A DNA stretch of 64,000 bases, taken from positions 62,001-126,000 of IMG/VR virus record IMGVR_UViG_3300032782_000001. One strand, given 5' to 3'. The first letter of the stretch is position 1. Each line of letters begins with the position of its first letter. Below the pieces are notes generated by a model, which saw only the letters and a list, made by a program, of their open reading frames with translations, was not told the origin of the DNA and searched no databases. Of the stretch, positions 3,169-35,722 are shown one piece after another. The translations under genes were made by a program, and so were the position numbers.

Positions 3169-3169
3169 C

Positions 3170-3661
3170 ATGTTTGAATCTGCTTGTCACTTCACCATGA
3201 AAGAATCTGTCGTCCGTAATTGTATTACGGGGGACGGTGAGGTCATCAGACTAAGTGTTAATGTATGCCTGACCGCTCAAATTGAATCCTATGGGATTAT
3301 CTGGAAAGTCACTGAAGAACGATGGGTCAAAGGTCTAAACGATGTTTATGAATCTGCGATCTTCACCGTGGGCACATGGCATTGTAATTTCCATGTCGGG
3401 TCGTATTATGATGATCCTGAATGGCTTGGCCGAATGGTTAAGACTAACGTAGTAGCAATCACCAAAGCCATCGGTATGATTGCCACCAAAGAGTCGGGGG
3501 ATCTTATTTATGATATTTTCATGGGGTTGTATTATCCTTCAGAACGAGAAGACCAGTACAACTCCTGGGTGAAAGAATCCGCTCCGGAAATTCATGAGAA
3601 AATGATTAACAACCTGCGAATGCGGAACATGCAAACCGTTCGAGAGGTAATGGAGGCGTGA
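3170..3661 (+). CDS. hypothetical protein with VMEA tail
   Basis: ATG at 3170 directly after the upstream stop; ends VREVMEA*. Confidence 0.65.
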   Translation: MFESACHFTMKESVVRNCITGDGEVIRLSVNVCLTAQIESYGIIWKVTEERWVKGLNDVYESAIFTVGTWHCNFHVGSYYDDPEWLGRMVKTNVVAITKAIGMIATKESGDLIYDIFMGLYYPSEREDQYNSWVKESAPEIHEKMINNLRMRNMQTVREVMEA

Positions 3662-4332
3662 TGGAAAAACCTCCGCTCCATCTCGTCATTTCTTACGTGC
3701 CACTTCTTACCGGAGAGGCCGGTTCTCATGTTGAGGCGGATTCCGATCAGATGTCGGACCTGTTTAAGAAGATCGACAGTCTTCCTAGTGGATTCGCGGA
3801 TGCCATTCTATGGAGTCAGTCGTCTGAAGGAGATCCATGGCCTATTTTCGTGATGGAAGATGCTAACCGAATCTTGGATCATCTGGTCGACTGGTCCGAA
3901 GGATCACCTACCTCGTGGTTCGATTTCAGGCTGCATTCCAGAGGCAGTGACTACGCCATGGCTCTCATGCCTAAAGTTGAGAAGTCTATTGATAGGTATA
4001 AACTCGCCATCGGAATGCAAACTGGCATTACTCCACCCAAAGATGGTAATTACAAAGTCTTGTTCAAAAGTATTCATTTCTCCAGTACGCCTGGAGAAAC
4101 TTCTACTTTTAGCATTGTGAAACCAATGATGAAGTCTAGTGTGAAAATTGGGTTTCTCGAAAAATCAGAGCTGGGTGCCAACGGTGAGATTCCGGGGGAT
4201 TTTGATCCAAAGAAAATTTACTGGATCGGACCTTTTGACGTCCAACCTGATTACCAGAACTTCCTCGCCAACATGCTACCGAAGAAGTCCAAGAATCGTC
4301 AGAAATTCGAACGCAGAGCTCGTCGAGGATAG
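3658..4332 (+). CDS. hypothetical protein
   Basis: 224 aa ORF coupled to the upstream stop. Confidence 0.65.
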   Translation: MMEKPPLHLVISYVPLLTGEAGSHVEADSDQMSDLFKKIDSLPSGFADAILWSQSSEGDPWPIFVMEDANRILDHLVDWSEGSPTSWFDFRLHSRGSDYAMALMPKVEKSIDRYKLAIGMQTGITPPKDGNYKVLFKSIHFSSTPGETSTFSIVKPMMKSSVKIGFLEKSELGANGEIPGDFDPKKIYWIGPFDVQPDYQNFLANMLPKKSKNRQKFERRARRG

Positions 4333-4350
4333 CGTTCTAGAAGAACACTA

Positions 4351-4887
4351 ATGAGTCGCGCTCCTTTCCCATCTGGCGGCATTTCTTGCAAGATTTGTGA
4401 GAAGCATGTCGGTTATAACGCCGGGAAAGACGCCGATGTTGAATTTGGGAAATATAGGCGTTTTTGTTCCCACTGCAGACAGTGGGTTCATTATTGGTGT
4501 TTTGTTCCCTCGGAAGCTCTCTGTCTGGAATGCAGTGGACCAAGTTTGGCCGCTATGAAAATGGGGGTCGAAGATTTAGAATTCGGTACTCAAGACGAGA
4601 AGAATACTGCCCTTCTCGTCATGTCTGCCTGGTCCGTTGGAACTGATGAATCTGACCTCGCAAAGTTCACTGGTCTGTCAGAGGAATTCATCCATCCTCG
4701 AGCCGAGAGACTTCGTCAGTCCGGAGTTTGGTCTGAAGATGGCAAAATCATTATAGACGCGAGCGCAGATATGAAAGATTGCCGCCATCTTCAGATCGTC
4801 ATCATCCTTCACACCCTCTGTGCCGAAGGCATGATTGTCTGCTCCAACAAGGAACATCGTGGAGACTCCGAAGAAAAAGTCATTTAG
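4351..4887 (+). CDS. CxxC-rich protein with possible HTH-like C-terminus
   Basis: three CxxC pairs; LAKFTGLSEE segment. Confidence 0.55.
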   Translation: MSRAPFPSGGISCKICEKHVGYNAGKDADVEFGKYRRFCSHCRQWVHYWCFVPSEALCLECSGPSLAAMKMGVEDLEFGTQDEKNTALLVMSAWSVGTDESDLAKFTGLSEEFIHPRAERLRQSGVWSEDGKIIIDASADMKDCRHLQIVIILHTLCAEGMIVCSNKEHRGDSEEKVI

Positions 4888-5115
4888 GCAAATTCTTCGA
4901 GAACACGGGTTCTCCCTCTCTGAGGAAGCTCAGGCTGCCTGCGGCATCCTTGCGGTTCCCGGTGATTACACCTTCATGCCTGAAGATTGTGAAGACGATT
5001 ATTTGATCGGATTCGTTGAAGGTCGTTACGACAGCATAAATGCTGGAAACGATAAACTCGTTGCAAAGGAAAAAGAGCAAGCTCGTGAAGAACTTCGACG
5101 TCGAGGATCCCTGAA

Positions 5116-7191: not shown

Positions 7192-8400
7192 ATGACGTAT
7201 GAACTTGTCGAGGGTGGACGAGTCCCTATTAAGGCATGGACTCAGGGTGTGAAGTTTGAAGCAGGAGCCAAACTCCAGCTCATCAAAACGGCCATGCTTC
7301 CAATCGTGCACGGGCACATCGCGGTCATGCCCGATGTCCATTATGGCATCGGAGCGACTGTCGGAAGTGTTATTCCAACCTTGAAAGCCATTATCCCGGC
7401 CGCGGTCGGAGTAGACATTGGCTGCGGAATGATGGCCGTTCGTACGACCTTATCCGCTGATGACCTTCCAGATAAGGCAGACGAACTCTTGTTCACCCAT
7501 ATCTCGGCAGCCGTCCCGCATGGAGGAGGGAAGGATAAGGCGGTCGGTTCATGGCAGAAAGTGCCAAAATACGTCAACGAGGCGTGGGGAGGTATTGCTC
7601 CGGGGCTCGACGGCATTCTGCGTCGTCATGGGCGCTCCTTGATGCCGAACGCAGAAGGGCAGCTCGGGACGCTCGGCGGAGGTAACCACTTCGTAGAAGT
7701 TTGCCTGGACCAGAATCAACGGGTTTGGTTCATGCTCCATTCCGGTTCCCGTGGCATTGGAAATCGGATCGGAACGCATTTCATCGAGCTGGCCAAGAAA
7801 GATATGGCTCGACTTGATCGCAGACTCCCTGACAAGGACCTTGCATACCTTGAGGAAGGTACTGAACATTTCGACGATTACGTTCAGGCGGTCACGTGGG
7901 CCCAAGACTATGCCCGCATTAATCGTGAACTGATGATGCGCGCGGTGGTGGATGCAGTTCGGAAGTCTGGTCTGCCGAAGTTCACTCTCACTGATGTTGC
8001 AGTGAATTGTCATCACAATTACGTCGCCCGCGAGACCCACTTCGGCGAGGAAGTGTGGGTTACAAGGAAAGGCGCTGTCCGTGCCCAGAAGGGCGACATG
8101 GGGATCATTCCCGGATCTATGGGCGCCAAGAGTTACATCGTTCGCGGAAAAGGGAACCCTGACAGTTTCAATTCTTGCTCGCACGGAGCGGGTCGCGTAA
8201 TGGCTCGAGGTGAAGCCAAGAGAACTATTACGCTCGAACAACACCGGGCGGATACCGCGGGGGTTGCCTGCCGCAAGGACAAAGAAGTTGTCGATGAAAG
8301 CCCGTCCGCTTACAAGCCTATCGACGATGTCATGGCCGCTCAGTCCGACCTCGTTGATATCGTCTTCACCCTCAAACAAATCACGTGTGTCAAAGGCTAA
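7192..8400 (+). CDS. rtcB: RtcB RNA 2',3'-cyclic phosphate/5'-OH ligase
   Basis: MPDVHYG, VGVDIGCG, GTLGGGNHF, HSGSRG, HHNY, TRKGA, PGSMG, SCSHGAGR, AYKPI motifs. Confidence 0.97.
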   Translation: MTYELVEGGRVPIKAWTQGVKFEAGAKLQLIKTAMLPIVHGHIAVMPDVHYGIGATVGSVIPTLKAIIPAAVGVDIGCGMMAVRTTLSADDLPDKADELLFTHISAAVPHGGGKDKAVGSWQKVPKYVNEAWGGIAPGLDGILRRHGRSLMPNAEGQLGTLGGGNHFVEVCLDQNQRVWFMLHSGSRGIGNRIGTHFIELAKKDMARLDRRLPDKDLAYLEEGTEHFDDYVQAVTWAQDYARINRELMMRAVVDAVRKSGLPKFTLTDVAVNCHHNYVARETHFGEEVWVTRKGAVRAQKGDMGIIPGSMGAKSYIVRGKGNPDSFNSCSHGAGRVMARGEAKRTITLEQHRADTAGVACRKDKEVVDESPSAYKPIDDVMAAQSDLVDIVFTLKQITCVKG

Positions 8401-11608: not shown

Positions 11609-11825
11609 ATGCAAATATCTCCTTGTCCGTGCTAAGACTGAACAGACTAGTCGTATTCATCAGGTATATGATGTTCTCCCCAGTCACAACACTTTCGGAG
11701 AGCCTGTTAACTTGGACCTATGGGAAGTAATTGAAGAGAGCCGGGACGGCTCGGCATCTGAGTGGATGCGACTTCTGACCAGGCGAGATGGCCTTCGCAT
11801 TATCTTCCAAGTTATGGAATCATGA
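11595..11825 (+). CDS. small protein with VMES tail
   Basis: ends IIFQVMES*. Confidence 0.6.
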   Translation: MDQIKCKYLLVRAKTEQTSRIHQVYDVLPSHNTFGEPVNLDLWEVIEESRDGSASEWMRLLTRRDGLRIIFQVMES

Positions 11826-11826
11826 A

Positions 11827-12096
11827 ATGGGAAAGTTCAAGCGACCACGTCGTGGTATCAAGCTTACCGATTCCACATATATGAAAATTAAGACTGCAAT
11901 TCGGTGTGACGACACTATCTACAAGATTGGTCGTTCTTCGGAACTTCAACGAAAGTTCCCTATCACACTCATCGTGAGCGACGGCAACATCCAAGATTAT
12001 CGATTCCGTCTCACTGTAGAGGCGGCTAAAAAGCTCGGTCAGAAGCTCATTGAATCTGCTGATTTGGCAGCAGTGTCTCAAGTCATGGATACTTAG
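11827..12096 (+). CDS. small protein with VMDT tail
   Basis: ends AAVSQVMDT*. Confidence 0.6.
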   Translation: MGKFKRPRRGIKLTDSTYMKIKTAIRCDDTIYKIGRSSELQRKFPITLIVSDGNIQDYRFRLTVEAAKKLGQKLIESADLAAVSQVMDT

Positions 12097-12233
12097 GGCT
12101 GTTCATGTAAGCCGCAAGTTCACAATCTTCTTCATGTTCTTTTTCCCCGTCACATTCGGGGCAAGTCTTGCATTGTTCGTAGGCGGCAAAGAGCCAATCA
12201 CGTACTTTCTCGAGCTCTTCTCTGAGCGCTGAC

Positions 12234-12587
12234 TCAGTGTCCGCCATACATCATTGAATGCTTGAAAGCGTCAAATAGGTCTTCCCGACCGGCAAAGCTC
12301 ATAGCGAAGATGCACCCGAATTTTTCTCCGACATATGCAGCTTCATAATCTTCCATGGGAAGCGACTTCCCCGTATGGACGTTGGCTTGCGTGAAGTCAA
12401 TGCCTTCTTCCAAAGCTTTTTGGCATAGCTTTATATATTCGTTCATGAATCCTGTGAATTCGATGAACGGGTGGTTGCCGATTTGGACCGCCAATGAATA
12501 GAAAGCATTCGATGCTTTCTTCATCTCTTTGATTTTCTGCTCAAGTTGTTCTCGAGTATGTGTTGCTTCAGGTTCCATTAGTTTCAT
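12234..12587 (-). CDS. hypothetical protein
   Basis: last gene of the minus-strand operon; HPFIEFTG motif. Confidence 0.65.
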   Translation of the reverse strand: MKLMEPEATHTREQLEQKIKEMKKASNAFYSLAVQIGNHPFIEFTGFMNEYIKLCQKALEEGIDFTQANVHTGKSLPMEDYEAAYVGEKFGCIFAMSFAGREDLFDAFKHSMMYGGH

Positions 12588-12903
12588 TTAGTTCTCCACA
12601 AGAGCAAGGGTCACACTCATTGCATACATTTAGTCCGTGTAACTTGCACGATATAGGAATAGCGCATGTCATCGCGAATCTCCTCTGACACCCTTTCTGG
12701 TGCCGACGAGCCTCGGTACAGACACATTGGATGAGCTGGCAGTCACAATCCTCCACTCGACCGCGAGCCGTCCAAACATCGAAATCTTCCAAGAATGCTC
12801 CTGGAGGAGCTTCCCCTGTATCAATCCAGTATTTCGTTCCTCGGACGATCTCTTCGGGTGGAGTCCCTTTCAAGAATAAAAGAACTTTGTTTTCGACGGT
12901 CAC
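12568..12903 (-). CDS. Cys-rich hypothetical protein
   Basis: coupled overlap; many Cys in the C-terminal half. Confidence 0.6.
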   Translation of the reverse strand: MTVENKVLLFLKGTPPEEIVRGTKYWIDTGEAPPGAFLEDFDVWTARGRVEDCDCQLIQCVCTEARRHQKGCQRRFAMTCAIPISCKLHGLNVCNECDPCSCGELNETNGT

Positions 12904-13499
12904 CAGTTTTCTCCAGGCTTCCTTTCGAAAGCTCCCTGGATCCTCTCTTTGACACTGTCCATGTTCGTCCCATCGTATCTGACCACATATCGATACGATC
13001 CGCGATTGGACGCGTACATCTCATTCCAAGGATGAGCAATGCAAATAACGAGACCTCGAGGCCTCACTTTCTGCCATGCTTCGAAATAAGGCGGGAAATC
13101 ATCGAAGAGGACGCGCCCATAGACAAGAGACTTGTCTTGAGTGATCGTGACGTTGGCCTTCGGCATGTTCTCCTGACACCACTCGACCTTCTCGGTCCAA
13201 GCTCCCGTTGTCTTGACGGGGCCCTTCGTCAGAGCATGAAGTTCGAACCCTACGGCTTCAAGCTCGGCCACCACCTCGAATCCGAGTTGGATTCGAGGAA
13301 GATTCCGCCAGAATCCAGGTTGCCTCTTGACGAGATCCCGACGAGCCACGATATGAGGAGGAATGTTGACCCACCCTTCATAGCGCTGTTCATCCGGGCC
13401 ATAGAGGGGTTCCATGGCCGTGGCCAAAGCACCATCATAATCTGCCACAGTTCCGTCGAGGTCGATGAGTGCAATCCTATCGCCAGCCGTTTTATTCAT
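12900..13499 (-). CDS. HAD-family 5'(3')-deoxyribonucleotidase-like protein
   Basis: LIDLDGTVAD, FWRNLP, WTEKVEW, LFDD, HPWN motifs; ATG overlaps the upstream stop. Confidence 0.85.
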   Translation of the reverse strand: MNKTAGDRIALIDLDGTVADYDGALATAMEPLYGPDEQRYEGWVNIPPHIVARRDLVKRQPGFWRNLPRIQLGFEVVAELEAVGFELHALTKGPVKTTGAWTEKVEWCQENMPKANVTITQDKSLVYGRVLFDDFPPYFEAWQKVRPRGLVICIAHPWNEMYASNRGSYRYVVRYDGTNMDSVKERIQGAFERKPGENW

Positions 13500-13855
13500 A
13501 CCAACTCCAATTCTTCGCCAATCAAGACTTCCGCCAACCCCCACGTTCCATCTTCGTGTGCCACAACACGTGTCACACGGACGAATTCTGGGGGAAGAAT
13601 TTCTGCGATGGCACTGGACGCCATTGAGACTCCTTTTACTTCCACTTCAGCCAAATCGTGTGGATCCACACGACCTTTCGCGAAGATGGCCGTTTCGCCG
13701 GTCGGAATGATTAGCTTGGACAAGTTCCCACGGATTCCACGTTTTACCCAAACGTACAACCCTTTTTGTCCTCCTTCCGATGCGACCATCCAAAGGTCTA
13801 CACGAGGAATACCGCCCAACAGCAGCCTCACTCCTTTCTCAGCTTTCAGTTTCAT
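13496..13855 (-). CDS. hypothetical protein
   Basis: in operon, overlaps neighbours. Confidence 0.55.
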   Translation of the reverse strand: MKLKAEKGVRLLLGGIPRVDLWMVASEGGQKGLYVWVKRGIRGNLSKLIIPTGETAIFAKGRVDPHDLAEVEVKGVSMASSAIAEILPPEFVRVTRVVAHEDGTWGLAEVLIGEELELV

Positions 13856-14321
13856 GGTCCGTCTTCAATTCCGGCTCGATTTTGACTGCTCCGTGTTTCT
13901 TGACAATGTGTTCGATAGTCTTAGTAGTGGAAGGCATTCCGGGAAGATCAGGGATGATGACGAGTTCTACATCAGTCCCTTCAAGTCCATGAATCACCTT
14001 TTCGTCACATAACATGTCCCAGAATGGATTATTCTTGAACATGAGACGGACGTTGAATCGACGGACGATAGCGTCGAGACGTTTGACATCTCGAAGAATG
14101 AATGCGGAGGATACGACTTTGAGTCCGTTGATGATCTCAAGTCGTTGAGTTTCGGAGACAATTGGGCGGGCGTGCCCTTTGGCCGCCCGCACCAAATCGT
14201 CCGAATCTACTGCGACGAGGAGTCTATCACATAGACTACGGCATCTCTGCAAGTACAGAAGATGACCATAATGAAACAGGTCAAAACAGCCCGTCGTCAG
14301 TCCGACGACGATCTCTCTCAC
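13839..14321 (-). CDS. cytidylyl/adenylyltransferase (RfaE-II/TagD-like HxGH family)
   Basis: TTGCFDLFHYGH, AVDSD, KGHARPI, STT motifs. Confidence 0.85.
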   Translation of the reverse strand: MREIVVGLTTGCFDLFHYGHLLYLQRCRSLCDRLLVAVDSDDLVRAAKGHARPIVSETQRLEIINGLKVVSSAFILRDVKRLDAIVRRFNVRLMFKNNPFWDMLCDEKVIHGLEGTDVELVIIPDLPGMPSTTKTIEHIVKKHGAVKIEPELKTDHETES

Positions 14322-15121
14322 GGCGATCCGAAACCGCCCGCTGCCACCTGGCTAAAGGCCGCTGCCGCCTGGCTGGCTCGAACGGCAGACTGGCTGACGA
14401 GGATGAAGGCTTTCCGGATCTCCGAAGGACTGTTCGTCGGAAGAAGAATCCAACTTCCATCGATGCCCATCTGTTCGAAAACCCTGCGGAAGTCGGTATG
14501 ACCACCGTCATCGATTCCCATGGCCGCGATGATGTGGCTCTCCTGCCTACGAAGGTCTCGCACGAGAGGTTCCACTGATGCAGGTCGCCGATGGGTCGTC
14601 GAGTGGACATCCGCTCCGTCGGTCACGATGACGGTCACCGTACGGACCGGAACGCCAGCGTCCGAGAACTCTTGGCTCTTGGCCAAGACCTGTCCGAGAG
14701 TGACCGCCGTCTGATCGTAGAGGGGCGTCCCTCCATTGGCCCGATAGTTCTTGTTGTCGAGCTTGGGAGCATTGTCAAGCGTGACGTACGGGTAGATGGG
14801 CGCCGTCCCGTTGAGGGTTCTGCAGCACACGAGAATCCCGTCTTTCTGCTTCGACTTACCAAGTGCCTCAATCACGAGATTGACGCCATCTCGTACGACC
14901 TGTTCGTTCCCCGCGTCTCGAATGGAACCGGAGTCGTCGACGAGGAAGGTGACAAGCAGAACCTCTGAAGCTTGCACATCATCCACCTTCACGCCGAGGC
15001 CTGCCTGGATGGCCGCTCCCATGTCGGGAATGTTGAGGACCGCAGCGCCAGCGGCGGTGATGGTATTCTCCGCCTGAGCGGTCTGGAAGAGACTGTTGAC
15101 GTTGTTTGCGTTCTGGCTCAT
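14318..15121 (-). CDS. von Willebrand factor A (TerY-like) protein
   Basis: MIDAS DDSGS, GGTPLYD, VIVTDG; start at MSQNANN preferred. Confidence 0.85.
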   Translation of the reverse strand: MSQNANNVNSLFQTAQAENTITAAGAAVLNIPDMGAAIQAGLGVKVDDVQASEVLLVTFLVDDSGSIRDAGNEQVVRDGVNLVIEALGKSKQKDGILVCCRTLNGTAPIYPYVTLDNAPKLDNKNYRANGGTPLYDQTAVTLGQVLAKSQEFSDAGVPVRTVTVIVTDGADVHSTTHRRPASVEPLVRDLRRQESHIIAAMGIDDGGHTDFRRVFEQMGIDGSWILLPTNSPSEIRKAFILVSQSAVRASQAAAAFSQVAAGGFGSP

Positions 15122-15422
15122 CGTTTGATCCCTCGTCGATATTCCTTGTAATTCTCCAACACCCGTTGCTGGTGCTCCCAATCGTGAGGTTTGAAACTCA
15201 CTTCTGGGATGTCGGTCGGTCCCAACTTATTGGCTCCATGCTTTGGCACAGTTCCAACAGGTTGGGACAGACAACTCTGGACATTCTCCGCACCGAGTCC
15301 TGACCTTCCGCAAACAGGACAGGTCACAGTTTGGAAGGGGTAGTCAGTCAGTTCGACTTCTACCCCCTGCCCAGTACACCAGGTCTTGCTCATGTAGACT
15401 GATACTTTTACAGTGATTCGAT

Positions 15423-17201
15423 CTACAGACGGATCCCCTCCCAGCTCGCAAGGGGGTCGGTGCTCCGATGCAGCTTCATCCCTGCATTCGCAAACTTGGC
15501 GAGTGCAATTTCCGTCTCCGGAGTGTAGTCCCGATACGGGGTGACGACGGAGCTCATACAATCCGTCAAGATGTGACACTTGGCGGCGAGCTTCGGATCC
15601 TGGACGAGGATTTCCTCGAGCAAATCCTCGATGCTCGACTTGACGCAATGGGAAGCGGCCTGACCTGCGATGATGACGGCATCGTAGCTCAGAAGCTTCT
15701 TGATGAACGACGTGTTCCTCTGCGCGAGAGCCTTGCCGTCATGCCGAGTAAGGACCTCGGGAGACAGAACGGAGTAGTTCTCGGTCAATGGGTGTCCACC
15801 CTTGACCTCACAGTTGGACTGCGTACCACGCGCCCATGCGTGGAAGAACTGTGCTTCGTTCAGGAGGCCGAGGAGTGAATGCCCGGGCGAACCGAGCAAG
15901 CAATGGAACGGCCAGCAGAGGAGCGTATACTTGCCCTTCTTCTCCAGCTCCCTGCAATAATGCGCCATGTACTGCGTGAGCCACGTGTAATTGCCATCGC
16001 AGAGCCACGAGGCAACCGCCGGGTTGGGTCGAACCTTTCCCTTGAGGACGTGTTCGGTCGTGATCTCGGTGAAAGTCGGAAGATGATTCCCGTCCTCGCC
16101 GAGCCACATGGAACGCACGAAGATCTGCTGCGAGAAGTGCGTATCCATCGTGAACGTCATGTCCGTGATGTGATGCATGTTGCGATAGATCCAAGCTGCC
16201 TTGCGAGCCGAATCCTCGATCGCACCGCGCTGGCTCCTGCCACCAACGTAAAGAGACCCCTGCGGGTGCAAGAAGTCCTTCTGGTCGTCGATGTTCAAAA
16301 CGTGAATCCGGAAAGCGTCCTTGCCAGATGGCTTGATGTCGTGCTGCTTGGCCCAGGCGACTGCATCGTCAAAGAGCTGATTGAGATTCGGAGCGTAGTT
16401 GTAAGACTCGGCATTCCTCGGGTCGAAGAACACCGGGAGAGGAAGTTCATCTTTGTGCTGTGACCTGGCCGTGATGGCGGCGAGCGCCGACGACGGGAGG
16501 GTGACATTGATATCCATGATCCGATGCGGGAACTTGGACAGTGGCTCATCCGGCACGATGAATTCGGGAACGCCGCGCTGACCGCTCGTGTTGCGCGTGT
16601 AACCGTTGCCCGTGTACTGCTCCTTGAGGTACACGGTGAAATAGAGGAAAGCTCGACATTCCTCGAGGGTGCCCTTGCTGGCTTGGAACCTGTCAATCGA
16701 CATGTAGCGTGGGTCTTTCGACCCAATATTGTCAACTTCCTTGAAGGAATACCCGAGCTTCGCCTCGATGCCAGGCAAATCCTCCGGCTGGAGGTTGCAA
16801 ATGGCGGCCCGGTGAGGCTTGATCTTCGACCAGACCTCCGGGTACTTCTCCTCGACAATAGACAAGACGTTGTCCCATGTGCCGAGCTTGCAAGCTTGCT
16901 CGGGGAAGATGACGAGCTTGACGGTCGTCCCGCCCTTGATCTTGCTCTCGATGTAGGCGTCGTCCCAGCCGACCTTCTGCAGCATCTCATAGCCGTTGAG
17001 GCCGAGAAGGCCCTCGAGACCTGAAGAATCGACGAGGAAGACTACTCGTCGATTCGGGTCATCGGTGAGCCTATCGAAGGCTCGGGGATTCTGCTTGAGA
17101 TTCCCGCGGGTGATGCGGCCTGCGAGACCCGTCACCTTCTGTGAAGCGGTCTTGCCGCTGGTGAAGAGCTTCTCGTATGCGTCGAGGATGGCGTTATTCA
17201 T
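15423..17201 (-). CDS. nicotinamidase/isochorismatase-family protein with extra ~245 aa N-terminal domain
   Basis: IDDQKDF, GSLYV, MDTH, WPFHC, KG..ENYS, AGQAASHCV motifs. Confidence 0.85.
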   Translation of the reverse strand: MNNAILDAYEKLFTSGKTASQKVTGLAGRITRGNLKQNPRAFDRLTDDPNRRVVFLVDSSGLEGLLGLNGYEMLQKVGWDDAYIESKIKGGTTVKLVIFPEQACKLGTWDNVLSIVEEKYPEVWSKIKPHRAAICNLQPEDLPGIEAKLGYSFKEVDNIGSKDPRYMSIDRFQASKGTLEECRAFLYFTVYLKEQYTGNGYTRNTSGQRGVPEFIVPDEPLSKFPHRIMDINVTLPSSALAAITARSQHKDELPLPVFFDPRNAESYNYAPNLNQLFDDAVAWAKQHDIKPSGKDAFRIHVLNIDDQKDFLHPQGSLYVGGRSQRGAIEDSARKAAWIYRNMHHITDMTFTMDTHFSQQIFVRSMWLGEDGNHLPTFTEITTEHVLKGKVRPNPAVASWLCDGNYTWLTQYMAHYCRELEKKGKYTLLCWPFHCLLGSPGHSLLGLLNEAQFFHAWARGTQSNCEVKGGHPLTENYSVLSPEVLTRHDGKALAQRNTSFIKKLLSYDAVIIAGQAASHCVKSSIEDLLEEILVQDPKLAAKCHILTDCMSSVVTPYRDYTPETEIALAKFANAGMKLHRSTDPLASWEGIRL

Positions 17202-17225
17202 GGGTTTCCTTCTGGGTATGACTCG

Positions 17226-19091
17226 TCAAGAGATGACGAGGAGCGAGATTTCTTGCCTTGATACTGCGTAGAGTCCGGCATTTGCGGCGATAAGTTTCAT
17301 TCCTGCGTCCACGAATGGCTCCGTATCAGGAAAGGTCTTCATCACCGACGCGGAGCCATTCTCTGCCTTGACTTGGACCACACCTTGATCGGTCGGGACG
17401 AGCAGTACGCGGTTCACGGCACAACATCCGCGAATGTTGGAAAGCCAAGACCCGTCGCCGGCTTCGGCTTCTGCCGAAGCTTCCACAGCGCCGTCGGGCC
17501 GCAGGACCGTGCAGCGATTGACAGTCTTGCTGCCTTCTTGAGTCGAAGTCAGGAACCAAGCCCTGTCTTTCGACAATTCGCAAGTTGCATCGATCAGTTT
17601 TCCTCTGATCAGATGAACTTTGACAGAATCGTTGATTCCGCCAGATTTGGTTCCGAACACGAACGACCTGACAAGTTGTCCAGCCCTGTAAAAGCCGAAT
17701 CCAAAGGTCTGCCCTGTCCAGAATAAAGTTTGGCCTCCAAGAACGTCCCCGATCCTTTCCGGACCGAGCCGTCCTTCCTTGTACAGAGAGTCCCCATGGA
17801 CCCAGAACAAGTTCTCATCATTCGTATCGAAGATAGTCAATGAACCAAGAAGATCTGCATCCGTCCTGCCCGCGGAAGTTCCTCCTACGAGTTTCACGAC
17901 GATCCCGTCTCTAGCCATGAAAGTTGATCTACCCTGAAGTCGGAACCTAAGCCTCGGATCAATTTGACCGTCTGCCACTCGTGAAGAATCTTCACGAATA
18001 AACTTCCCATTGTCGTGATAAAGCCAAATGAGGCGGCCTTCGTGGAGGTCGGCCCTTACTATAGTTCCGCGGGTTTGGAAAATCCTTGTAGCTTTCACCT
18101 GGCCCCGGATTTCCACATGTGCTTTGACAGCTTCAGGTACAATAGTGGAACAGTGGGGACATGAAGTGCGAGCGTGTTCTGCTCCACATCCTGAGCATTT
18201 TGTCCAATGGAGCCTCTCGAGCAGACTAGCAGGAAATGGTCCCCTCTCATCTCGCTCGAATACGAGATGGAACCTCTGCAAGAGATCATCCGGCAAAACA
18301 CCGTATGGAATGGCGGGCTTCGGGTATTTCACTTCCGGGTGGAAGACTGTAATTCGTTTGAGAGGCCTTGCTGAATGGACTAAAGCCTTCGTCGGATCAT
18401 GCGGTTTATAAGTACCTCCGAACGGGTCCGTGAAGAGAAGGCACTGGAACACCATTACGAAGAATGCATACCAATCCGAATTCTCGTTATGAGCCTTCAC
18501 GAGATGGAGGCTGTTGGCAGCAGGATCACAAAGAGTTGGATCCACAAATCGCTGCGTGAAAACAGAGCAACGGAATTTCCCGAATTGCATTGAATCGGCA
18601 TCAATGAAATCCGCGTCCTTCCCCGTTACCATGACATTCAAATCATTGAAATCGCCGATAACCGCTCCCGCCTTGTGTATGGCGTCTACGGTAATCCTCA
18701 TCCCCTTGAGAATAGAAATGACATCTTCGGTGCTGATAGCCTGACGGAAATTGCGTTGCGTGTAACGAAGGAGAACTTCCGCCCCTTTCAGCATTCGCAT
18801 CACATATCCGACAGTCCGTCCTTTTCCATCCAATGCCAAGGCATCTGGAATAACGACATGGCCTGGCATACCTTTCGGGAATGCGGGCAATTTCAATTGA
18901 TGCTCTTCAATCCTGCGAGATGCTGCTGCTTGAGCTTCGGGTTGACCGTCGAAGTCGGGATGGTCAGGTCGCTTAAAGATCTTCACAACCTGATCAGTGC
19001 CGAATGGATAGATCTCCGCTTCTCCTCCTTGACCGAGAATTTTGCTCGGATCCAGCCGACTCTTTTTTCCGTCAACCCAGATGTCAGGCAC
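17226..19091 (-). CDS. Ser/Thr protein kinase (TerY-P type) with CxxC and beta-rich C-terminus
   Basis: LGQGGEA, VKIFK, IGDFNDLNV, IDADS; GTG start at 19091 overlaps the PP2C stop. Confidence 0.88.
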   Translation of the reverse strand: MPDIWVDGKKSRLDPSKILGQGGEAEIYPFGTDQVVKIFKRPDHPDFDGQPEAQAAASRRIEEHQLKLPAFPKGMPGHVVIPDALALDGKGRTVGYVMRMLKGAEVLLRYTQRNFRQAISTEDVISILKGMRITVDAIHKAGAVIGDFNDLNVMVTGKDADFIDADSMQFGKFRCSVFTQRFVDPTLCDPAANSLHLVKAHNENSDWYAFFVMVFQCLLFTDPFGGTYKPHDPTKALVHSARPLKRITVFHPEVKYPKPAIPYGVLPDDLLQRFHLVFERDERGPFPASLLERLHWTKCSGCGAEHARTSCPHCSTIVPEAVKAHVEIRGQVKATRIFQTRGTIVRADLHEGRLIWLYHDNGKFIREDSSRVADGQIDPRLRFRLQGRSTFMARDGIVVKLVGGTSAGRTDADLLGSLTIFDTNDENLFWVHGDSLYKEGRLGPERIGDVLGGQTLFWTGQTFGFGFYRAGQLVRSFVFGTKSGGINDSVKVHLIRGKLIDATCELSKDRAWFLTSTQEGSKTVNRCTVLRPDGAVEASAEAEAGDGSWLSNIRGCCAVNRVLLVPTDQGVVQVKAENGSASVMKTFPDTEPFVDAGMKLIAANAGLYAVSRQEISLLVIS

Positions 19092-19917
19092 GGTGCAAAA
19101 TTCTCCTTCCAGAAACGAAAGTCGTGTCGTCTTCCAGCAAACCTGGAAATCTGGACCCGACTCCTCCATTAGCAAGGACGAGGTGACGCCGTCCAACATC
19201 CGCGTTGAGGAAGAATTTTTCATCCTCCCAAAGCTGACTCATGGGTCCGACAGTTCGAGTCTTTCCAGGAAGCGGTTTGTCCGCTGACTTATGAAGTGAA
19301 GTCAACCCGTCGCTCCCGATCAAGAAGCTTTGAAGGTCTTCAGTCTTCATCGCCTTATGCACAACGAATTGCATTTGTTCCTCCTTCATGGAGGTCTTCA
19401 CAAGCCCGTAGCCAAGATATGGCGGCATATTGCCTTCGAATGGCCCAAGGAATGATGTCTCCCCGTTCACAGAGATGCACCCATCGCCGATAGACGCGAA
19501 TTCGGTCCGTTCGGGGGTAATGACAACGCAAACAACAGTGAAGAGAAAATAGTCGTTGACGAACGATGGATTCACACGCCCTTCGGAATCTTCGGCACCA
19601 ATCCCCCGAGCCCACTTTCGCATCTCCCAGAGGGCGTCCCGTCGGATAATAGACCAGGCCAGAATTTCTCTGGGGTTCCGAATAGTCCATCCAGATCGGA
19701 CTCGAAGGTGGTCAGCGATTGTGTGGGTCAGAAGAAGAGACCCGAATTGTGCTCCGACTTCGCTATACTTACCGCTCGAGCATCCGTCGCAAACCACTGC
19801 GATTGTGAAATCCGAAGTTTGGAGAATCGATACCCCATCCTGATTGTTCTTGCCAGCTCGGATATGATCATATCCGGGAATACTCCCGCGAGCCAGTTCG
19901 AAAATGTTCTGCATCAA
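19084..19917 (-). CDS. PP2C-family protein phosphatase
   Basis: NNQD, VVCDGCSS, SIGDG, GSDG, DDTT motifs. Confidence 0.9.
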   Translation of the reverse strand: MMQNIFELARGSIPGYDHIRAGKNNQDGVSILQTSDFTIAVVCDGCSSGKYSEVGAQFGSLLLTHTIADHLRVRSGWTIRNPREILAWSIIRRDALWEMRKWARGIGAEDSEGRVNPSFVNDYFLFTVVCVVITPERTEFASIGDGCISVNGETSFLGPFEGNMPPYLGYGLVKTSMKEEQMQFVVHKAMKTEDLQSFLIGSDGLTSLHKSADKPLPGKTRTVGPMSQLWEDEKFFLNADVGRRHLVLANGGVGSRFPGLLEDDTTFVSGRRILHRA

Positions 19918-21002: not shown

Positions 21003-23609
21003 TCAGGCGTGCGGTTGGGTCGTGCCGTTAGTGGCGGCGGGAAGAAGGTGCTTTGCCAGTGGCGAGCCTTCAACCATTTTGCGGAGGACCTCGAGAACGG
21101 AATCTCCTCCAAGGAGCGCCATGGGTGCCATCGACTTGGCAACCCTCTCAATGAGTTCACGTTCTCCGAACGAATTGAGTGCAGCAATGAGATCCGGCGA
21201 GACTGCCTTAGCCCTCTCGACATGACCTTGAATCTCGGCTTGAAGCCAGGCAACCCTCTGAGCGAGTTTGGCGGCTTCAAGTTCGATGGTCTGCTCTTCA
21301 GCAGCACGAACAGTATGGAGCTTGATTTGAGCTTCTTGAGCCCTAGCTTGTTCCATTGCCATGGAGAGCTTGCACTTCTCTCCATCGGTCTGATTTTGAG
21401 CATCGAGCTTGGCAAGATCCGATGCGAGAGAGGACTTGAGTTCCTCGAGAGCCAGTTCATGCTGCTTCACGACAGTCTCGGTCCTTACCTCGGCCGTCCG
21501 TTGTTTGATAGTCTCGGATTCACGGGTGAATTCGAGAATACGCTTCTCTTTGGCAAGGCTCAACGTGTGATTAATGACCTCACGTTGAGCATTGGTGAGG
21601 AGTTGAGCGAGATTCTTATCTTCGAGAGCGACGTCTAAGACTTCGATATCGTAGATGTTCATTCCGTTTTCTTCGAACTTCGTTCCCGTTCGAGTCACCT
21701 TGCCGTTGGAGGGATCGACGGTCTTTCCAAGAACGACATCACGAATGATATCATCTGATTTCGCGTAGAACTCCTCGACGCCGATCTTCTTGATCGCGTT
21801 GCGGAGCTTGGACCTCATGTGATCGCAAAGGAATTTGACGTAGTTCTCGACTCCGAACCACGACTCAGAATCCCCCTCGAAGTTCACTCGATACGAGACT
21901 TTCACGTCGAGCTTGCAGAAATCGGACGTTTCCACCTTTACGACGTCCGAGACCTTGTTTGCTCGGGTGAGAAGAAACGCAGTCCTGAGAAGATTGTCCG
22001 TCGTCTTGGGCTTCCCACGAGAGAGCATCAGAACTTGCGGCGACTCGTCGTACTCGAGAAGAACCGTCTGCGGTCCCACGACTACACGCTTCTCACCGCT
22101 CTTGCGGACGAGCATCATGGCGTAACCAGTCCAGACCTCTACCGTGACTGCCCCATCCCATTTCGTCTGAAGAGTGATCGTGCGCGGCGGAGTATACTGC
22201 GTCTTGCGTTCGAACTGGTCTCCGGAAAAACCCTTAGCAGGCTTATTCCCGAGCCCTCGAAGCATCGCATCGTCTCCGACGAGCCCTGCAGAGTACATGG
22301 CATTGGAAGAGATGTCCATACCGCGAATGGGAGCCGTGGCTGCAGCCGCTACGGCGACTGCTGCGGGAGACCCGATGGCTTCACTCAGATAAGAGGAAAG
22401 GTTCACTCCTGCGAGTTGAGCGTTGTATGCCATCGCTTCCGTGTTGCCAGGATATAGCATATCACAGATTTTCAAGTCGAGGATACGACGCGTGATAACT
22501 TCCTTCCTCGGGTCAGGAAGAAAGACCGTTGGGCCCCTGACGAGCTTGATATCACCGCTGTTGCGGTCGAGAACATACCGTGCTTCACCGGCAGGAATGG
22601 CGATACCGTAGAAGACATCCGAATTGTCGTACTTGACAATCGCATGCTCTTCCCGCGGGAAATAAATCATCTGCTGGCGACCGGTGATGAAGAGTTCGTC
22701 TCCGACCTTATGTTGCTGGCCGTCTTCTTCATAATCGGCGATGACTTTGACGTAAATACCGGAATTTTCGTTCAGCTCAATGGCCTTGTGCTTTCGAGTC
22801 TTGTTCGTACCGCCGGCCTTACCATCCGAAATTTCGCGCGTGGCGAATACTTCAGTAGGCCTCGGAAATACGACCTGAGGACCGCGTTCATAACGCTTAT
22901 TCCCGTTCTCATCGTAGAGCAGGCAGTATTCCAACCGGCCGAGGGTTACGGCCTCACGAACGAGGTTGCCGTTCTCATCTGCCACGACCTCCACACCCGT
23001 CGGAGGAATGTAGAAGGAGACTTCAGTTCCCTTGATGACAAGGAGCTTGCCCATAGTGAGATCGGGCGGGGATTCGCTGGTAAGCGTGTAATCTGGGTCC
23101 TGAGTTGCTTCCGTTCCGGGATCCTTCTGGACCTGCGTCTTGATGATGGCATTCTTCCAGTTCTTGGTCGCTGCCTCTTCATCGTAGACACGAACGAGAA
23201 GATACTGATTGGAACGGATATGATGTCCCTTCAGCACCTTGGCCATCTGACCAGGCCATAGAGCGAAGCTCACGGGACCTGGAGTGTTGACTTTCCGGCC
23301 GATTTCAAGCTCGGAAGTGCTGGCCTTTCCAGGAATAGAAGGCCTTTTCCCATCCTTTGCAGGATTCTTGAGGACGATGTACCATCCTTCAGGAGCGGTT
23401 TTGACCGTTTGAATGGCTTCCTTGAGCTCTACCCGCTTGAATCGCTTAGTGGATTCATCAAAGATTACGGGTTGATCAGTGCCCGACAAGCTTTGCTTCG
23501 TCGGGCCTACGAAGACGTCGATGATACCTTTCGTCTCGTCAGAGACATAAAGATATTCATTGGGAGCGAGAATCATATCACGCTCTCGGCGATTACTTTC
23601 TTCTGCCAT
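21003..23609 (-). CDS. major vault protein (MVP) homologue: vault repeats, SPFH-like shoulder, cap helix
   Basis: repeated xxGP-containing vault-like repeats; RVVVGPQTVLLEYDE.PQVLMLSRGKPK...SDVVKVETSD..KLDVKVSY..NF resembles the MVP repeat-9/shoulder region; long C-terminal coiled coil; 868 aa; AGGAG SD. Confidence 0.85.
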   Translation of the reverse strand: MAEESNRRERDMILAPNEYLYVSDETKGIIDVFVGPTKQSLSGTDQPVIFDESTKRFKRVELKEAIQTVKTAPEGWYIVLKNPAKDGKRPSIPGKASTSELEIGRKVNTPGPVSFALWPGQMAKVLKGHHIRSNQYLLVRVYDEEAATKNWKNAIIKTQVQKDPGTEATQDPDYTLTSESPPDLTMGKLLVIKGTEVSFYIPPTGVEVVADENGNLVREAVTLGRLEYCLLYDENGNKRYERGPQVVFPRPTEVFATREISDGKAGGTNKTRKHKAIELNENSGIYVKVIADYEEDGQQHKVGDELFITGRQQMIYFPREEHAIVKYDNSDVFYGIAIPAGEARYVLDRNSGDIKLVRGPTVFLPDPRKEVITRRILDLKICDMLYPGNTEAMAYNAQLAGVNLSSYLSEAIGSPAAVAVAAAATAPIRGMDISSNAMYSAGLVGDDAMLRGLGNKPAKGFSGDQFERKTQYTPPRTITLQTKWDGAVTVEVWTGYAMMLVRKSGEKRVVVGPQTVLLEYDESPQVLMLSRGKPKTTDNLLRTAFLLTRANKVSDVVKVETSDFCKLDVKVSYRVNFEGDSESWFGVENYVKFLCDHMRSKLRNAIKKIGVEEFYAKSDDIIRDVVLGKTVDPSNGKVTRTGTKFEENGMNIYDIEVLDVALEDKNLAQLLTNAQREVINHTLSLAKEKRILEFTRESETIKQRTAEVRTETVVKQHELALEELKSSLASDLAKLDAQNQTDGEKCKLSMAMEQARAQEAQIKLHTVRAAEEQTIELEAAKLAQRVAWLQAEIQGHVERAKAVSPDLIAALNSFGERELIERVAKSMAPMALLGGDSVLEVLRKMVEGSPLAKHLLPAATNGTTQPHA

Positions 23610-26987: not shown

Positions 26988-29903
26988 GTGGCAATCGGCG
27001 TAACCGCATACTCGACTTCCAAAACACCAAATCTGGTGGAAGCCATTGCAGTTCTGACATCGACTGAGTCGATTCCAGATCCTGTCAGCGTGCTGGTATC
27101 CAATATTGCACAGGTTTATGGCGCCTTACAAATCACACAAGGAGCATTTACCTTATCAGAATTGTCTCTGACAAAGTCCACTCCACCGGCCAACCAATCT
27201 TCTTTTTCTTACACATTTGTAATCCGATTCAATTCTCCAGGTCTTTACACGCCAGGAAGGTTCCAAGGTCCACCTGGTCCTCAAGGGCCCCCAGGTCAAT
27301 TCCAAGGTCCACCTGGTCCTCAAGGGCCCAGGGGGCTCACCGGGGCTATGGGCATCAGGGGTGTTCCAGGGCCTATGGGTCCGGTCGGTCCTCCTGGTTT
27401 CAACGGCGCCACCGGACCCATGGGTCCGCAGGGGGCCACCGGTCCGGGAGGTGGCCCTCCAGGCGCAACCGGTCCTGCAGGGCCGCAGGGTGCAACTGGA
27501 CCTTTTGGAGCGACTGGACCACAAGGTGTAGCTGGAGCGACTGGACCACAAGGTGTCACAGGACCATTTGGGCCAACTGGTCCCCAAGGACCAGCAGGAC
27601 CGGAGTCTGGTGGAGGAAACGTTTTCGTCTACCGAGACTCAGAACCATCGCCAAACAACACAACAGTCTTCGCTTCATTTGATGAAGCGTATTCGGCGGC
27701 TATTTCTACAAATGCTCCGGCTGTTATTGTCAGTGACGACACGCTCGGGGACTGTGTCGTAGGCAACGCCTACGGCAACAATGCCACCGTCGATTCTGTA
27801 GTGGGTTCCACGGTCACGCTCAAGGGCCTCCATGGGTTGAATACAGGGCTCGTCGGCAAATTGATTGGCATTTCCAACGCGACGAGTCCTGGCACGAACG
27901 GTCTATACACCATCACGGCGATCCTTTCATCGAAGAGTCTTCAGATAGCGAACGCAGCAGCCACTATAGACGACATTTTCGAGTGGCGTCTCGTCGATGG
28001 AAGCACAGCGTCTCTCACTCCTGGCCCGTCCAATTTGGTTCTTATTCAGGGTGCCGTCGTTCCTAACGGAACGAATAGCCCGCCAGGTGCATTTTCATCG
28101 GCGAGTGTTGGACAGACAGTCACCCTCACGAACGGCCTCTCTGGAAATAATGGGACCTTCCCCATCGTCGCGTATGTCTCGCCTTCGTCCGTATGGATCC
28201 AGAACGCCTCTGGTGTTGGCCCCGATAGTGTGTATCTCGTGGCCGCGAGTGGCAGTACAGCCTCGATCATAAGCTGGGACTCCATCCGCAATACGGCTAT
28301 CCTTACAGGCCTTTCGAGTGTCCCTCCGCAGACGGATGGTTGGCACATCATCATCACTGGATCGGCAAGCAACGATGGCATCTACCAAGTTGTACGCACA
28401 CTCTCGACGACTTCCATCGAGATCCGTTCGTACGGAGCCACAGCGCCCGATGCGAACAACGGCGCCATCTCATGGAATCTCTGCCCATCGAATGCATTGA
28501 TCCCGTTTGCCGCTGTGCCAGTCCTGTCCGTCACGGGTCTCAGTAGCGTGCCCAGTTCGGCGGTTGGGAACGCACTGAGCCTCGGCAACGCCACGACTTC
28601 CGGCAACAACGCCTCTTCCGCAATCCTTGGGTGGGTTGACGCCACATCCGTCTATTTGAATTCATTCAATGGAAGCTTCGTGGCACCAGATCCGAACAAC
28701 GGTTCTCTTTGGTGGTATCTCGGCACAAATTACGACCTCAGCCGCATCACGCTCACAGGGCTCGGTGTGCCTTTCGGCGGCTCTTCCTTGTCTGTCCTCG
28801 AAGGCGCAACCTTCAACCAAGGTATAGCTGCCGTCATCAACTCCTTGGAGGTAGCGGGAGAAGGGAGCCTACAGCCTTTCTACGGGACGCTTGCCCTAGT
28901 CGGCCCATTCAATAGCCTGCTCAACATCTCTGATGGGAGTACGATTAGCTGCAACTCCAAAGACTTTTTTGACCTTAGCTGGGGGCTCGCGACCCTAAAT
29001 GTGACGGTGGCCTCCCAAGCCGAAATTGATAACCTTGCATGGACGGGAGACAACTATAACGCAGGTCTCAATGTCACCATGTCCGGAGGTGCTGAAGTTG
29101 GCGGGGACCTTATTTCTGGTGGCGCGGGCTCCGTGGGGATCACGATCCTGGATGCGACAGTTAATCCACCGCCCGTGACTTTCGGCGGCTATTACGGAAC
29201 GCCAGGGAGTGGTATTCAAATCACATATGAAGCCACAGCCGCTTCTCTTGTCCCATTCACACAGAATGGTCCACCTACTCCCAATAATTCAGGGCAACCT
29301 CAAGGTCAATACAATGTCGATGTCGGAACGATGTATTTCGATTCCGGCTCGAAGCAACCATTTTGGTGGGATGGTACGCAGTGGGTTTCATACGTTGCTC
29401 CGTCGTTCGCCACGACTAACGTATATCAGGGCCATGCCTCTCCCCAAACTACGAATTTGAATGCCGGCGACCATGTAATGTTTGACTCGTCCGACACCGA
29501 AACTGGTGGCGGAAACATTAGTCTTGACACCACATCGCCATATCAAACGGCACCAGGTCCAAGTATTGGTCGTATCTCACTTGCCGCAGAGCATCTTTAC
29601 AAACTCACGTTCAATCCTTCGCAAGTTTCCGGCGCTGGGAATATTTATTTCCAATGGTTCGTCTACAATAGTATTTACCCGAACGGTCAAGCCATGGGGA
29701 ATGGCACGCGGATGGACGATGGTACTAATGTTGGTGACTTTGCAAGTCATGGCCCGTGTGTCGCGTATGTATACACAAATTCTGGGAGTGGCGGTGCTGG
29801 CACCGCCGAGATCCGTATCACATTTAATAATTCGATAACGGGACTCGGGGAAAATGCGGCATCTCCTCTTTACGCGTGGTTTACCGTCGAGCAAGTCTAC
29901 TAA
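26988..29903 (+). CDS. collagen-repeat virion fibre / decoration protein
   Basis: long Gly-X-Y tract followed by repeated beta-rich Ser/Thr/Gly domains; 971 aa. Confidence 0.85.
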
Positions 29904-35490: not shown

Positions 35491-35565
35491 GAACCCGTAG
35501 TTCAGCGGTAGAACGACTGGCTTTTAACCAGTGCGCCGTGAGTTCGATCCTCACCGGGTTCACCA
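35491..35565 (+). tRNA. tRNA-Lys(TTT)
   Basis: cloverleaf, CCA. Confidence 0.9.
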
Positions 35566-35580
35566 GTCGTAAGACTGAAT

Positions 35581-35652: not shown

Positions 35653-35722
35653 CCGGGCCACGAAAGTGCCTGACGTGTCACATGCGTGCTTCTGCACGCC
35701 ACGGTTGAGAAGTGTTCATCAT

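Follow-up and report, generated by a model that had tools for sequence, protein, structure and literature searches.

Why does a giant phage carry a nicotinamidase-like hydrolase in the middle of a phosphatase, kinase and von Willebrand factor A (vWA) gene set? The question was raised by a minus-strand gene array in the IMG/VR virus record IMGVR_UViG_3300032782_000001, of which bases 62001-126000, a stretch of 64,000 nucleotides (nt) here called the window, were analysed. Comparison of related loci showed that the genes for a PP2C-type phosphatase, a serine/threonine (Ser/Thr) kinase, the hydrolase and a vWA protein are a fixed four-gene cassette (PP2C > kinase > nicotinamidase > vWA), which appears to have been taken whole from bacteria by a giant-phage lineage. 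We consider it reasonably probable that this cassette is a phospho-regulated nicotinamidase module of nicotinamide adenine dinucleotide (NAD) salvage, which the phage would use to keep or rebuild NAD. The main features of the window for this reading are as follows.

19084-19914, minus strand: PP2C-type Ser/Thr phosphatase of 276 amino acids (aa), first in the array, identified with Pfam PP2C_2 (PF13672).
17226-19091, minus strand: Ser/Thr kinase of 621 aa, identified by its AlphaFold2 fold, Foldseek and invariant residues, with a kinase domain (about residues 1-295), a zinc ribbon (C299, C302, C311 and C314) and a beta-propeller (about residues 325-621).
16488-17201, minus strand: N-terminal domain (residues 1-238) of a 592-aa protein, here called IsoN, found on phage-like contigs only.
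15423-16487, minus strand: nicotinamidase-like (PncA-like) cysteine hydrolase domain (residues 239-592 of the same protein), identified by homology and catalytic residues.
14318-15121, minus strand: vWA protein of 267 aa with an intact metal-dependent adhesion site (MIDAS), identified by a structure match and motif.
33239-34585, plus strand: nicotinate phosphoribosyltransferase PncB, identified with the NCBIfam equivalog TIGR01513 and Pfam NAPRTase_N.

The virus record is a single contig of 436,316 bp with a guanine-cytosine (GC) content of 50%, direct terminal repeats and a CheckV completeness of 100%, and 44 tRNA genes, tail-fibre genes and an RtcB ligase were found within the window. The phage origin is therefore sound, as the preliminary description of this DNA had supposed. 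Megablast of the array region against GenBank phages produced no matches, and an alternative genetic code was unnecessary. The array consists of ten consecutive genes running head-to-tail from 19914 to 12234 in the order PP2C, kinase, 592-aa hydrolase fusion, s91, vWA, HxGH nucleotidyltransferase, g119, NT5C, g111 and g117, with successive gaps (overlaps being negative) of -8, 24, 29, -4, -4, -17, -4, -4 and -20 nt. Shine-Dalgarno-like sites precede most of the starts. The array is bordered by a divergent plus-strand gene from 19955 and by a convergent plus-strand block ending near 12096-12232. The six genes named in the preliminary description were all present on the minus strand where it had placed them, with PP2C, the nucleotidyltransferase and NT5C passing the Pfam cut-offs, and the tight coupling that it had reported was confirmed, with no gap exceeding 29 nt and five of the overlaps measuring 4-8 nt. 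Its gene list was correct as far as it went but incomplete, and s91, g119, g111, g117 and the 238-aa N-terminal domain of the hydrolase were added. The kinase start that it had put at 19223 was corrected; the most likely start is the GTG at 19091, which follows a GGAGGA-like site GGAAGGAG and gives an 8-nt overlap with the PP2C stop.

A scan of one genome per species (185,579 genomes) showed that the hydrolase is encoded by approximately 485 of them, chiefly Myxococcota (including Myxococcus xanthus) and Elusimicrobiota, and 80 bacterial loci were then retrieved and compared. The vWA gene came after the hydrolase in all 80 loci, the kinase came before it in 76, and the full order of PP2C, kinase, hydrolase and vWA was found in 60, with median spacers of 4, 28 and 38 nt. 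No further family in the flanks of the 80 loci was conserved to a comparable degree. Contigs with close bacterial homologs of the hydrolase carried PP2C, a 550-650-aa protein, the hydrolase and a 260-aa protein in this order, all homologous to the window genes (PP2C 28-34%, kinase 40%, hydrolase 58-62% and vWA 53-57% identity). For the viral contigs, nine further IMG/VR contigs with the hydrolase were compared, seven of 235-318 kb and two shorter ones of 42 and 97 kb. All four cassette genes were present in eight of them (GC 33-68%; seven of 235-318 kb and the one of 42 kb). The ninth, L090, has its contig end just upstream of the kinase, and the locus starts there. One more IMG/VR contig with the hydrolase (GC 68%, 81 kb) may be bacterial. 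A distant version of the cassette was also detected with tblastn in the GenBank huge uncultured phages LR756500.1, LR745208.1 and LR756511.1 (GC 24-56%), where the kinase and hydrolase lie close together on one strand, with vWA between them in all three and PP2C between them in two; PP2C was not found by tblastn between the kinase and hydrolase of LR756511.1. Overall, the cassette was found on at least 12 other giant-phage contigs.

Such an arrangement lies well outside what chance would give: the same order recurred in three quarters of the bacterial loci (60/80) and in 8/9 IMG/VR contigs. The preliminary description had allowed that the genes might not be co-conserved, and this was answered by the strong co-conservation seen in both sets. 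It had also remarked on a nicotinamidase-family gene inside the triad; the gene is indeed there, as a fixed member of a bacterial four-gene cassette and not as a phage-specific insertion. A quick, unrooted tree of the kinase placed the window, eight viral contigs and the metagenome-assembled genome contigs L008 and L073 in one clade (Shimodaira-Hasegawa-like approximate likelihood ratio test, SH-aLRT, 100), while the bacterial branches followed families and phyla. One capture by a phage lineage and subsequent spread among giant phages would be the simplest reading of this tree, with the direction unproven.

The three proteins of the putative switch retained the residues expected of their families. 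PP2C matched PP2C_2 at 1.9e-18 (67 bits against a Pfam cut-off of 24), kept the metal-binding DG/GDG/SDG/DD motifs across 67 homologs and shared 28-41% identity with the gene that opens the bacterial cassettes. The kinase protein had no Pfam matches and a PDB search with its family profile returned nothing at E 0.001; its sequence matches were weak, with PD-T4-6 (1.8e-5) and PglW in PADLOC, LanL in NCBIfam (1.9e-6) and RSK in the PDB (7e-4). The AlphaFold2 model of the kinase, made with 33 homologs, showed a kinase domain, a zinc ribbon and a beta-propeller with a predicted local distance difference test score (pLDDT) of 91 and a predicted template modelling score (pTM) of 0.88. Foldseek matched this model in the PDB to the LRRK2 kinase-WD40 structure (3e-11) and also to PKA, RSK2 and PknG. 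Residues G20, G22, G23, K37, D147, N152, D164 and D166 and the four Cys were invariant. The vWA protein scored 2e-4 with Pfam VWA (21-22 bits, under the cut-off of 23.8), in a family of which only one of 47 members scored at all, and its family profile found nothing in the PDB at E 0.1. The ESM Atlas model of the protein (pTM 0.90) aligned with a cluster that is 85% VWA, with template modelling (TM) scores of 0.69/0.86. The MIDAS motif DxSxS..T..D was kept, with D62, D63, S64, S66, T132 and D168 invariant, and in each of the 80 bacterial loci the gene that follows the hydrolase encodes a protein 53-61% identical to it.

Assignment of the hydrolase came from homology and catalytic residues. The C-terminal 308 residues (285-592) were 57-67% identical to bacterial proteins of approximately 350 aa annotated as nicotinamidase or cysteine hydrolase (3015 matches). 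The triad D305/K467/C519 and the metal site D353/H355/H433 were invariant in the family, in alignments of 22 and 47 homologs. With E up to 1, the only PDB matches of the hydrolase family profile were the nicotinamidases 3r2j, 3pl1 and 2h0r and the cysteine hydrolase 3irv; in these profile matches the Asp-Lys-Cys triad aligned with the PncA motifs, and WPPHC aligned with the WPxHC motif of 3pl1 and 3r2j. Some homologs also pass PF00857 (L001 with 28.7 bits against a cut-off of 27) and many of the matches carry precomputed PF00857, while the hydrolase ortholog of L094 reached 1.4e-7 with the PncA model NF008623 (31.6 bits against a cut-off of 174). The family thus shares with PncA/Pnc1 (3pl1, 2h0r and 3r2j) the Asp-Lys-Cys triad, the Asp-His-His metal site, DxQxDF, WPxHC and the Cys-bearing helix, but it differs in its length (approximately 350 aa against 186-227), a 45-aa N-terminal extension, an insert of approximately 75 aa and, in this phage, fusion to a 238-aa domain.

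The neighbouring genes of the bacterial loci pointed to NAD salvage. At least one NAD gene was found within 7 kb of the cassette in 42 of the 80 loci. NrtR, a Nudix-related repressor of NAD salvage operons such as nrtR-pncA-pncB-nadD-nadE (PMC2330246), was present in 36 loci; in 30 of these it immediately preceded the cassette on the same strand, at a median distance of 260 nt. PncB was the commonest enzyme neighbour (13 loci), and NadE, NadD and Prs were found in 3, 2 and 2 loci, respectively. In Elusimicrobiota and Entotheonella, PncB was the gene straight after vWA; in Archangiaceae it was located within 6 kb. The cassette closest to that of the window (kinase 55%, PP2C 41% identity) was found on L073, a bacterial contig with an extracytoplasmic function (ECF) sigma factor and an HlyD gene, where the gene order is NrtR > PP2C > kinase > hydrolase > vWA > NadD-like > PncB > Prs > glutamine-dependent NadE. 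The tie to NAD proposed in the preliminary description was therefore upheld, with NrtR, PncB, NadD, Prs and NadE beside the cassette.

NAD genes were also identified with the cassette in phages. PncB of the window, located 13 kb from the cassette, reached 456 bits with TIGR01513 (cut-off 297) and 6.7e-32 with NAPRTase_N, and was 35-42% identical to the cassette-adjoining PncB of 12 bacterial loci. A NAPRTase-family gene was found in four of the five other cassette phages. NadE and PncB are interspersed among the cassette genes of L094, a complete phage of 253 kb, in the order PP2C, three small open reading frames (ORFs), IsoN, NadE, GIY-YIG endonuclease, PncB, two small ORFs, kinase, hydrolase, Pif1, RNase H, small ORFs and vWA. 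The phage L093 has NadE upstream and a NadD-type transferase downstream of vWA (102 bits with TIGR00482; 1.7e-29 with NadD models). A proteasome-type (HslV-like) subunit and an AAA ATPase (11676-12239 and 2863-4224) border the NAD genes of L093. In L001 (LR756500.1, 62000-84000, GC 24%), a NadE homolog was located at 15981-16667 on the minus strand, 3.4 kb upstream of the cassette and on the same strand, and the NAD link therefore reaches a divergent phage lineage.

Because of this NAD-gene context and the invariant nicotinamidase residues, the nicotinamidase step of Preiss-Handler salvage is the most likely function. In bacteria, the cassette most likely belongs to the route that leads from nicotinamide to NAD (Preiss-Handler, 'salvage I'), and the hydrolase is most likely an enzyme converting nicotinamide to nicotinate, as predicted from its residues and the pncB/nadD/nadE/nrtR context. 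PncB catalyses the step following nicotinamidase. In the proposed scheme, the hydrolase would deamidate nicotinamide to nicotinate, PncB (33239-34585) would turn nicotinate into nicotinate mononucleotide (NaMN), and NAD would be finished by NadD and NadE of the host or, in related phages, by the phage copies. The kinase and PP2C would set the phosphorylation state of either the hydrolase or the vWA protein. The latter may act through its MIDAS as a docking or sensor subunit of the switch, and the beta-propeller of the kinase may receive the input signal. In the infected cell, NAD would be kept or rebuilt from nicotinamide, for example after NAD-cleaving defences of the host had fired. What the comparison shows directly is which genes are present, their order and conservation, the intact catalytic motifs and the NAD genes around them; the substrate, the phosphorylation target, the vWA role, the sensing by the propeller and the benefit to the phage are the parts of this scheme that we infer.

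The TerY-P triad consists of a TerY-like vWA protein, PP2C and a Ser/Thr kinase with a C-terminal zinc ribbon, as recounted in PMC10542128 from Anantharaman et al. 2012. The same three protein types lie in one array here, a four-Cys zinc ribbon directly follows the kinase catalytic domain, and the MIDAS and PP2C metal sites are intact. The likeness to the triad reported in the preliminary description was borne out, with a match to the TerY-P description for phosphatase and zinc-ribbon kinase and support for the vWA protein at the level of its fold. However, the cassette has a fixed nicotinamidase-like fourth gene between kinase and vWA and a beta-propeller on the kinase, its context is NAD salvage (NrtR, PncB, NadD and NadE) instead of tellurite-resistance or restriction genes, and a unit of four conserved genes stands against the three-gene TerY-P model of PADLOC, which gave no match at E 0.01. 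The yegL-pphC-yegI locus of Escherichia coli (bioRxiv 10.1101/819920) encodes the same protein types, but YegI is membrane-anchored whereas the model of the window kinase has no such segment. Likeness to the NrtR operons (Rodionov et al. 2008, PMC2330246) is seen in L073, where nrtR and genes for pncA-like, nadD-like, pncB, prs and nadE are co-directional, and in the 30 loci of Myxococcota and other bacteria with nrtR directly upstream of the cassette. In contrast to those operons, the PncA here belongs to a divergent 350-aa subfamily with a long insert and is bracketed by the PP2C-kinase pair and vWA, a bracket unmentioned in PMC2330246, and the phage copy lacks NrtR. No description of the cassette was found in a full-text literature search, which could not reach many subscription papers, and a prior description is possible.

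Several results weigh against a nicotinamidase module for NAD supply. The 592-aa protein of the window had no match with the Pfam or NCBIfam nicotinamidase models (PF00857 and NF008623), a PDB sequence search with it returned nothing, and the nicotinamidase matches of the family profile in the PDB were weak (E 0.002-0.3). The family carries an insert of approximately 75 residues between the metal ligands, and its substrate could therefore be a larger pyridine amide. For 38 of the 80 bacterial loci, the search within 7 kb turned up no NAD gene. NadE, Prs and NadD-type genes were missing from the phage genome, and the phage would therefore have a partial pathway, at most the first two salvage steps, with the host supplying the rest; no Nudix gene was found in the phage genome either. 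The counter-defence role is purely conjectural. A predicted complex of hydrolase and vWA scored 0.00, which is evidence neither way. It can also be argued that the hydrolase is an isochorismatase-superfamily amidase acting on another substrate, such as nicotinamide mononucleotide (NMN), nicotinamide riboside (NR), NAD or a protein or peptide amide, and that the triad controls that reaction. The unreached cut-offs of the curated nicotinamidase models and the long insert would fit, and so would an Elusimicrobiota genome which has a canonical PncA (238 bits) in addition to the cassette, so that the cassette enzyme could differ. We regard this as quite unlikely, as the family keeps all six nicotinamidase-specific residues without variation, among them those of the metal site to which the pyridine nitrogen binds, and no other enzyme neighbours the cassette as often as PncB, which acts on the product of nicotinamidase. 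Three Myxococcota genomes also had no canonical PncA above the cut-off, although the model is narrow and passed in only one of 14 control genomes. Action on NMN or NR would still mean an NAD-salvage module.

Another possibility is a TerY-P-type conflict system, in which the switch would sense a competing phage or host stress and unleash the nicotinamidase, and perhaps the nucleotide enzymes, leading to superinfection exclusion or rewired host signalling. The set of vWA, PP2C and zinc-ribbon kinase matches the TerY-P triad of PMC10542128, where TerY-P-like modules are reported as stand-alone anti-phage systems, the kinase has its weak matches to the defence kinases PD-T4-6 and PglW, and the cassette recurs on giant phages of widely differing GC. 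However, none of the ten proteins matched a TerY-P model of PADLOC at E 0.01, the weak kinase matches being the only ones to any defence model there, and the flanks hold NrtR and NAD biosynthesis genes and no defence islands. Identity of the hydrolase between phyla is approximately 60% and the bacterial tree agrees with taxonomy, a pattern typical of housekeeping enzymes and not of defence genes, and removal of nicotinamide is no obvious toxic act. A conflict system is thus decidedly improbable, and the inter-phage exclusion or override of host signalling suggested in the preliminary description was not supported, given a bacterial cassette that follows taxonomy and sits behind NrtR. A further explanation starts from IsoN, which would be an ADP-ribosyltransferase-type NAD consumer; the fusion would remove inhibitory nicotinamide, and the module would serve host modification and not NAD supply. 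ADP-ribosyltransferase-fold NAD users were over-represented among the sub-threshold matches of the IsoN model (AlphaFold2, pLDDT 88), which is a lead only: weak fold matches were obtained with the RES toxins 8gug, 9r35 and 6fkg, the SPN NADase 3pnt, DarT (8baq and 7yk3), ParT (6d0h), TreTu (7zhl) and PltA (4z9d). The domain is tied to the cassette in three phage loci, but it also occurs away from it, unconnected in L088. All of these fold matches were below significance, with a best Foldseek E of 0.28 in the PDB, a best VIA Z of 3.6 on a scale where unrelated models typically reach 7-8, and ESM Atlas TM of at most 0.35. We hold this explanation to be very improbable, and regulated NAD salvage is kept as the preferred reading.

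IsoN itself was rare. Among 5.8 billion proteins it had three homologs, to which one ORF of L094 can be added, and every one of these lies on a phage-like contig. L004 encodes the domain as an ORF of its own immediately ahead of the hydrolase, and in L094 it is located between PP2C and NadE, just before NadE. In L004, the closest phage-like relative, IsoN and the nicotinamidase are two ORFs (3212-4946) read in different frames, and their homologous regions share approximately 50 nt. Either the window's fusion may thus be of recent origin or a frameshift may be present in L004.

The remaining genes of the array are as follows.

15118-15393, minus strand: s91, a Cys-containing protein of 91 aa, translationally coupled to vWA through an ATGA stop/start overlap.
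13839-14321, minus strand: HxGH nucleotidyltransferase of 160 aa, cytidylyltransferase-like, identified with Pfam CTP_transf_like.
13496-13855, minus strand: g119, an ORF with a codon score of 0.155 that overlaps both neighbours.
12900-13499, minus strand: HAD-type 5'-nucleotidase (NT5C family) of 199 aa, counted from the ATG at 13499, identified with Pfam NT5C.
12568-12903, minus strand: g111, a small Cys-rich ORF with a low codon score (0.009).
12234-12587, minus strand: g117, the last gene of the array, a phage family (phrog_37280 at 1.2e-20).

The gene s91 fills an apparent 300-nt gap before vWA, with an in-frame codon score of 0.077 compared to -0.46 and -0.24 for the remaining two frames, and no homolog was present in any related locus searched. 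The HxGH nucleotidyltransferase matched CTP_transf_like at 7e-12 (46 bits) and the NCBIfam model rfaE_dom_II with 80 bits (cut-off 181), and its top PDB matches were the ethanolamine-phosphate cytidylyltransferase 3elb (3.5e-13), 3glv and TagD. It is the sole member of the HxGH family in the phage genome and occupies the position held by NadD in L073 and L093. Its identity as the missing NadD was considered and rejected, since it is cytidylyltransferase-like and L073 has a NadD-like gene plus a separate homolog of this nucleotidyltransferase; no NadD or nicotinamide mononucleotide adenylyltransferase (NMNAT) match was found in the PDB or NCBIfam, where the models listed were rfaE_dom_II, CoaD and TagD-type. 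That homolog, the only one in related loci (36% identity), lies in L073, on the strand opposite to the NAD operon and at its far end. NT5C matched its Pfam family at 4.7e-12 (46.6 bits) as well as phrog_420 and phrog_2643 (5'-3' deoxyribonucleotidase), and its homologs were absent from all cassette-bearing loci searched. For g119, no family matches were obtained and homologs were absent from related loci, as they were for g117. A homolog of g111 with 47% identity lies between kinase and IsoN in L004 (1484-1660) and a weak match lies beside vWA in L003 (16094-16282), a distant huge phage; g111 may be a phage-specific cassette accessory. By this distribution, the downstream nucleotidyltransferase, NT5C and small ORFs are best described as phage-specific neighbours outside the conserved unit, and these include the nucleotide enzymes with which the preliminary description had the operon extended.

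Other genes of the window were also identified. A major-vault-protein ORF of 868 aa was located at 21003-23609 on the minus strand (MVP_shoulder 4e-29, Vault_3 1.2e-10 and weak Band_7), approximately 1 kb past the array start with two short plus-strand ORFs between; a vault homolog on a phage is unusual. The 44 tRNA genes occupy 35491-53165 on the plus strand with small ORFs interspersed. They were reported to cover 19 of the 20 amino acids, and their list holds four genes with a Met anticodon and neither tRNA-Trp nor tRNA-Tyr. A 393-aa ORF in the tRNA region (39587-40768, plus strand) resembles in its N-terminal part a translation elongation factor family (phrog_6880, 1.8e-27). The RtcB-type RNA ligase (7192-8400, plus strand; phrog_1075 at 1e-141) suits a phage with a large tRNA set. 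Two adjacent tail-fibre/collagen-like proteins with a common repeat-bearing N-terminal region were found at 26988-29903 and 29941-30924 on the plus strand.

NAD is a central battleground between phages and bacteria, and many defences destroy it. Three phage pathways that rebuild NAD, namely NARP1, NARP2 and NARP3, have been described since 2024 (bioRxiv 10.1101/2024.02.11.579819; PMC13464706). The module described here would similarly be a set of phage-borne enzymes that rebuild NAD from cleavage products, with nicotinamide as the entry as in NARP1 and NARP2. However, the present route would be a deamidating one (PncA-like hydrolase and PncB, with NadD or NadE in some phages) with a kinase, phosphatase and vWA switch. 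None of the described NARP pathways goes through a nicotinamidase or is coupled to a signalling switch, and nicotinamidase, PncA and PncB are unmentioned in both papers. The NARP enzyme pairs (Adps and Namat; Nampt and Nmnat) were not found in the phage genome, in which PnuC and NadR were not searched for directly, and the only phosphoribosyltransferase of the genome is the nicotinate phosphoribosyltransferase equivalog. A bolder version of the preferred reading is unlikely in its entirety but has some chance of being right. It holds that the cassette is a fourth, deamidating NAD route of phages, gated by a eukaryote-like switch of kinase, PP2C and vWA and outlasting NAD-cleaving immunity, that in this phage the hydrolase is fused to a new NAD-handling domain, and that in Myxococcota the switch controls NAD salvage post-translationally in a manner so far undescribed.

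If regulated NAD salvage is the function, a regulated Preiss-Handler-type route would join the phage repertoire, and the poorly understood vWA/PP2C/kinase triad would gain a concrete metabolic output that can be assayed. Recognition of the 'triad plus odd enzyme' as a fixed four-gene unit changes how such loci should be annotated. Finally, in Myxococcota and Elusimicrobiota, Ser/Thr phosphorylation would control NAD salvage beside the transcriptional control by NrtR.

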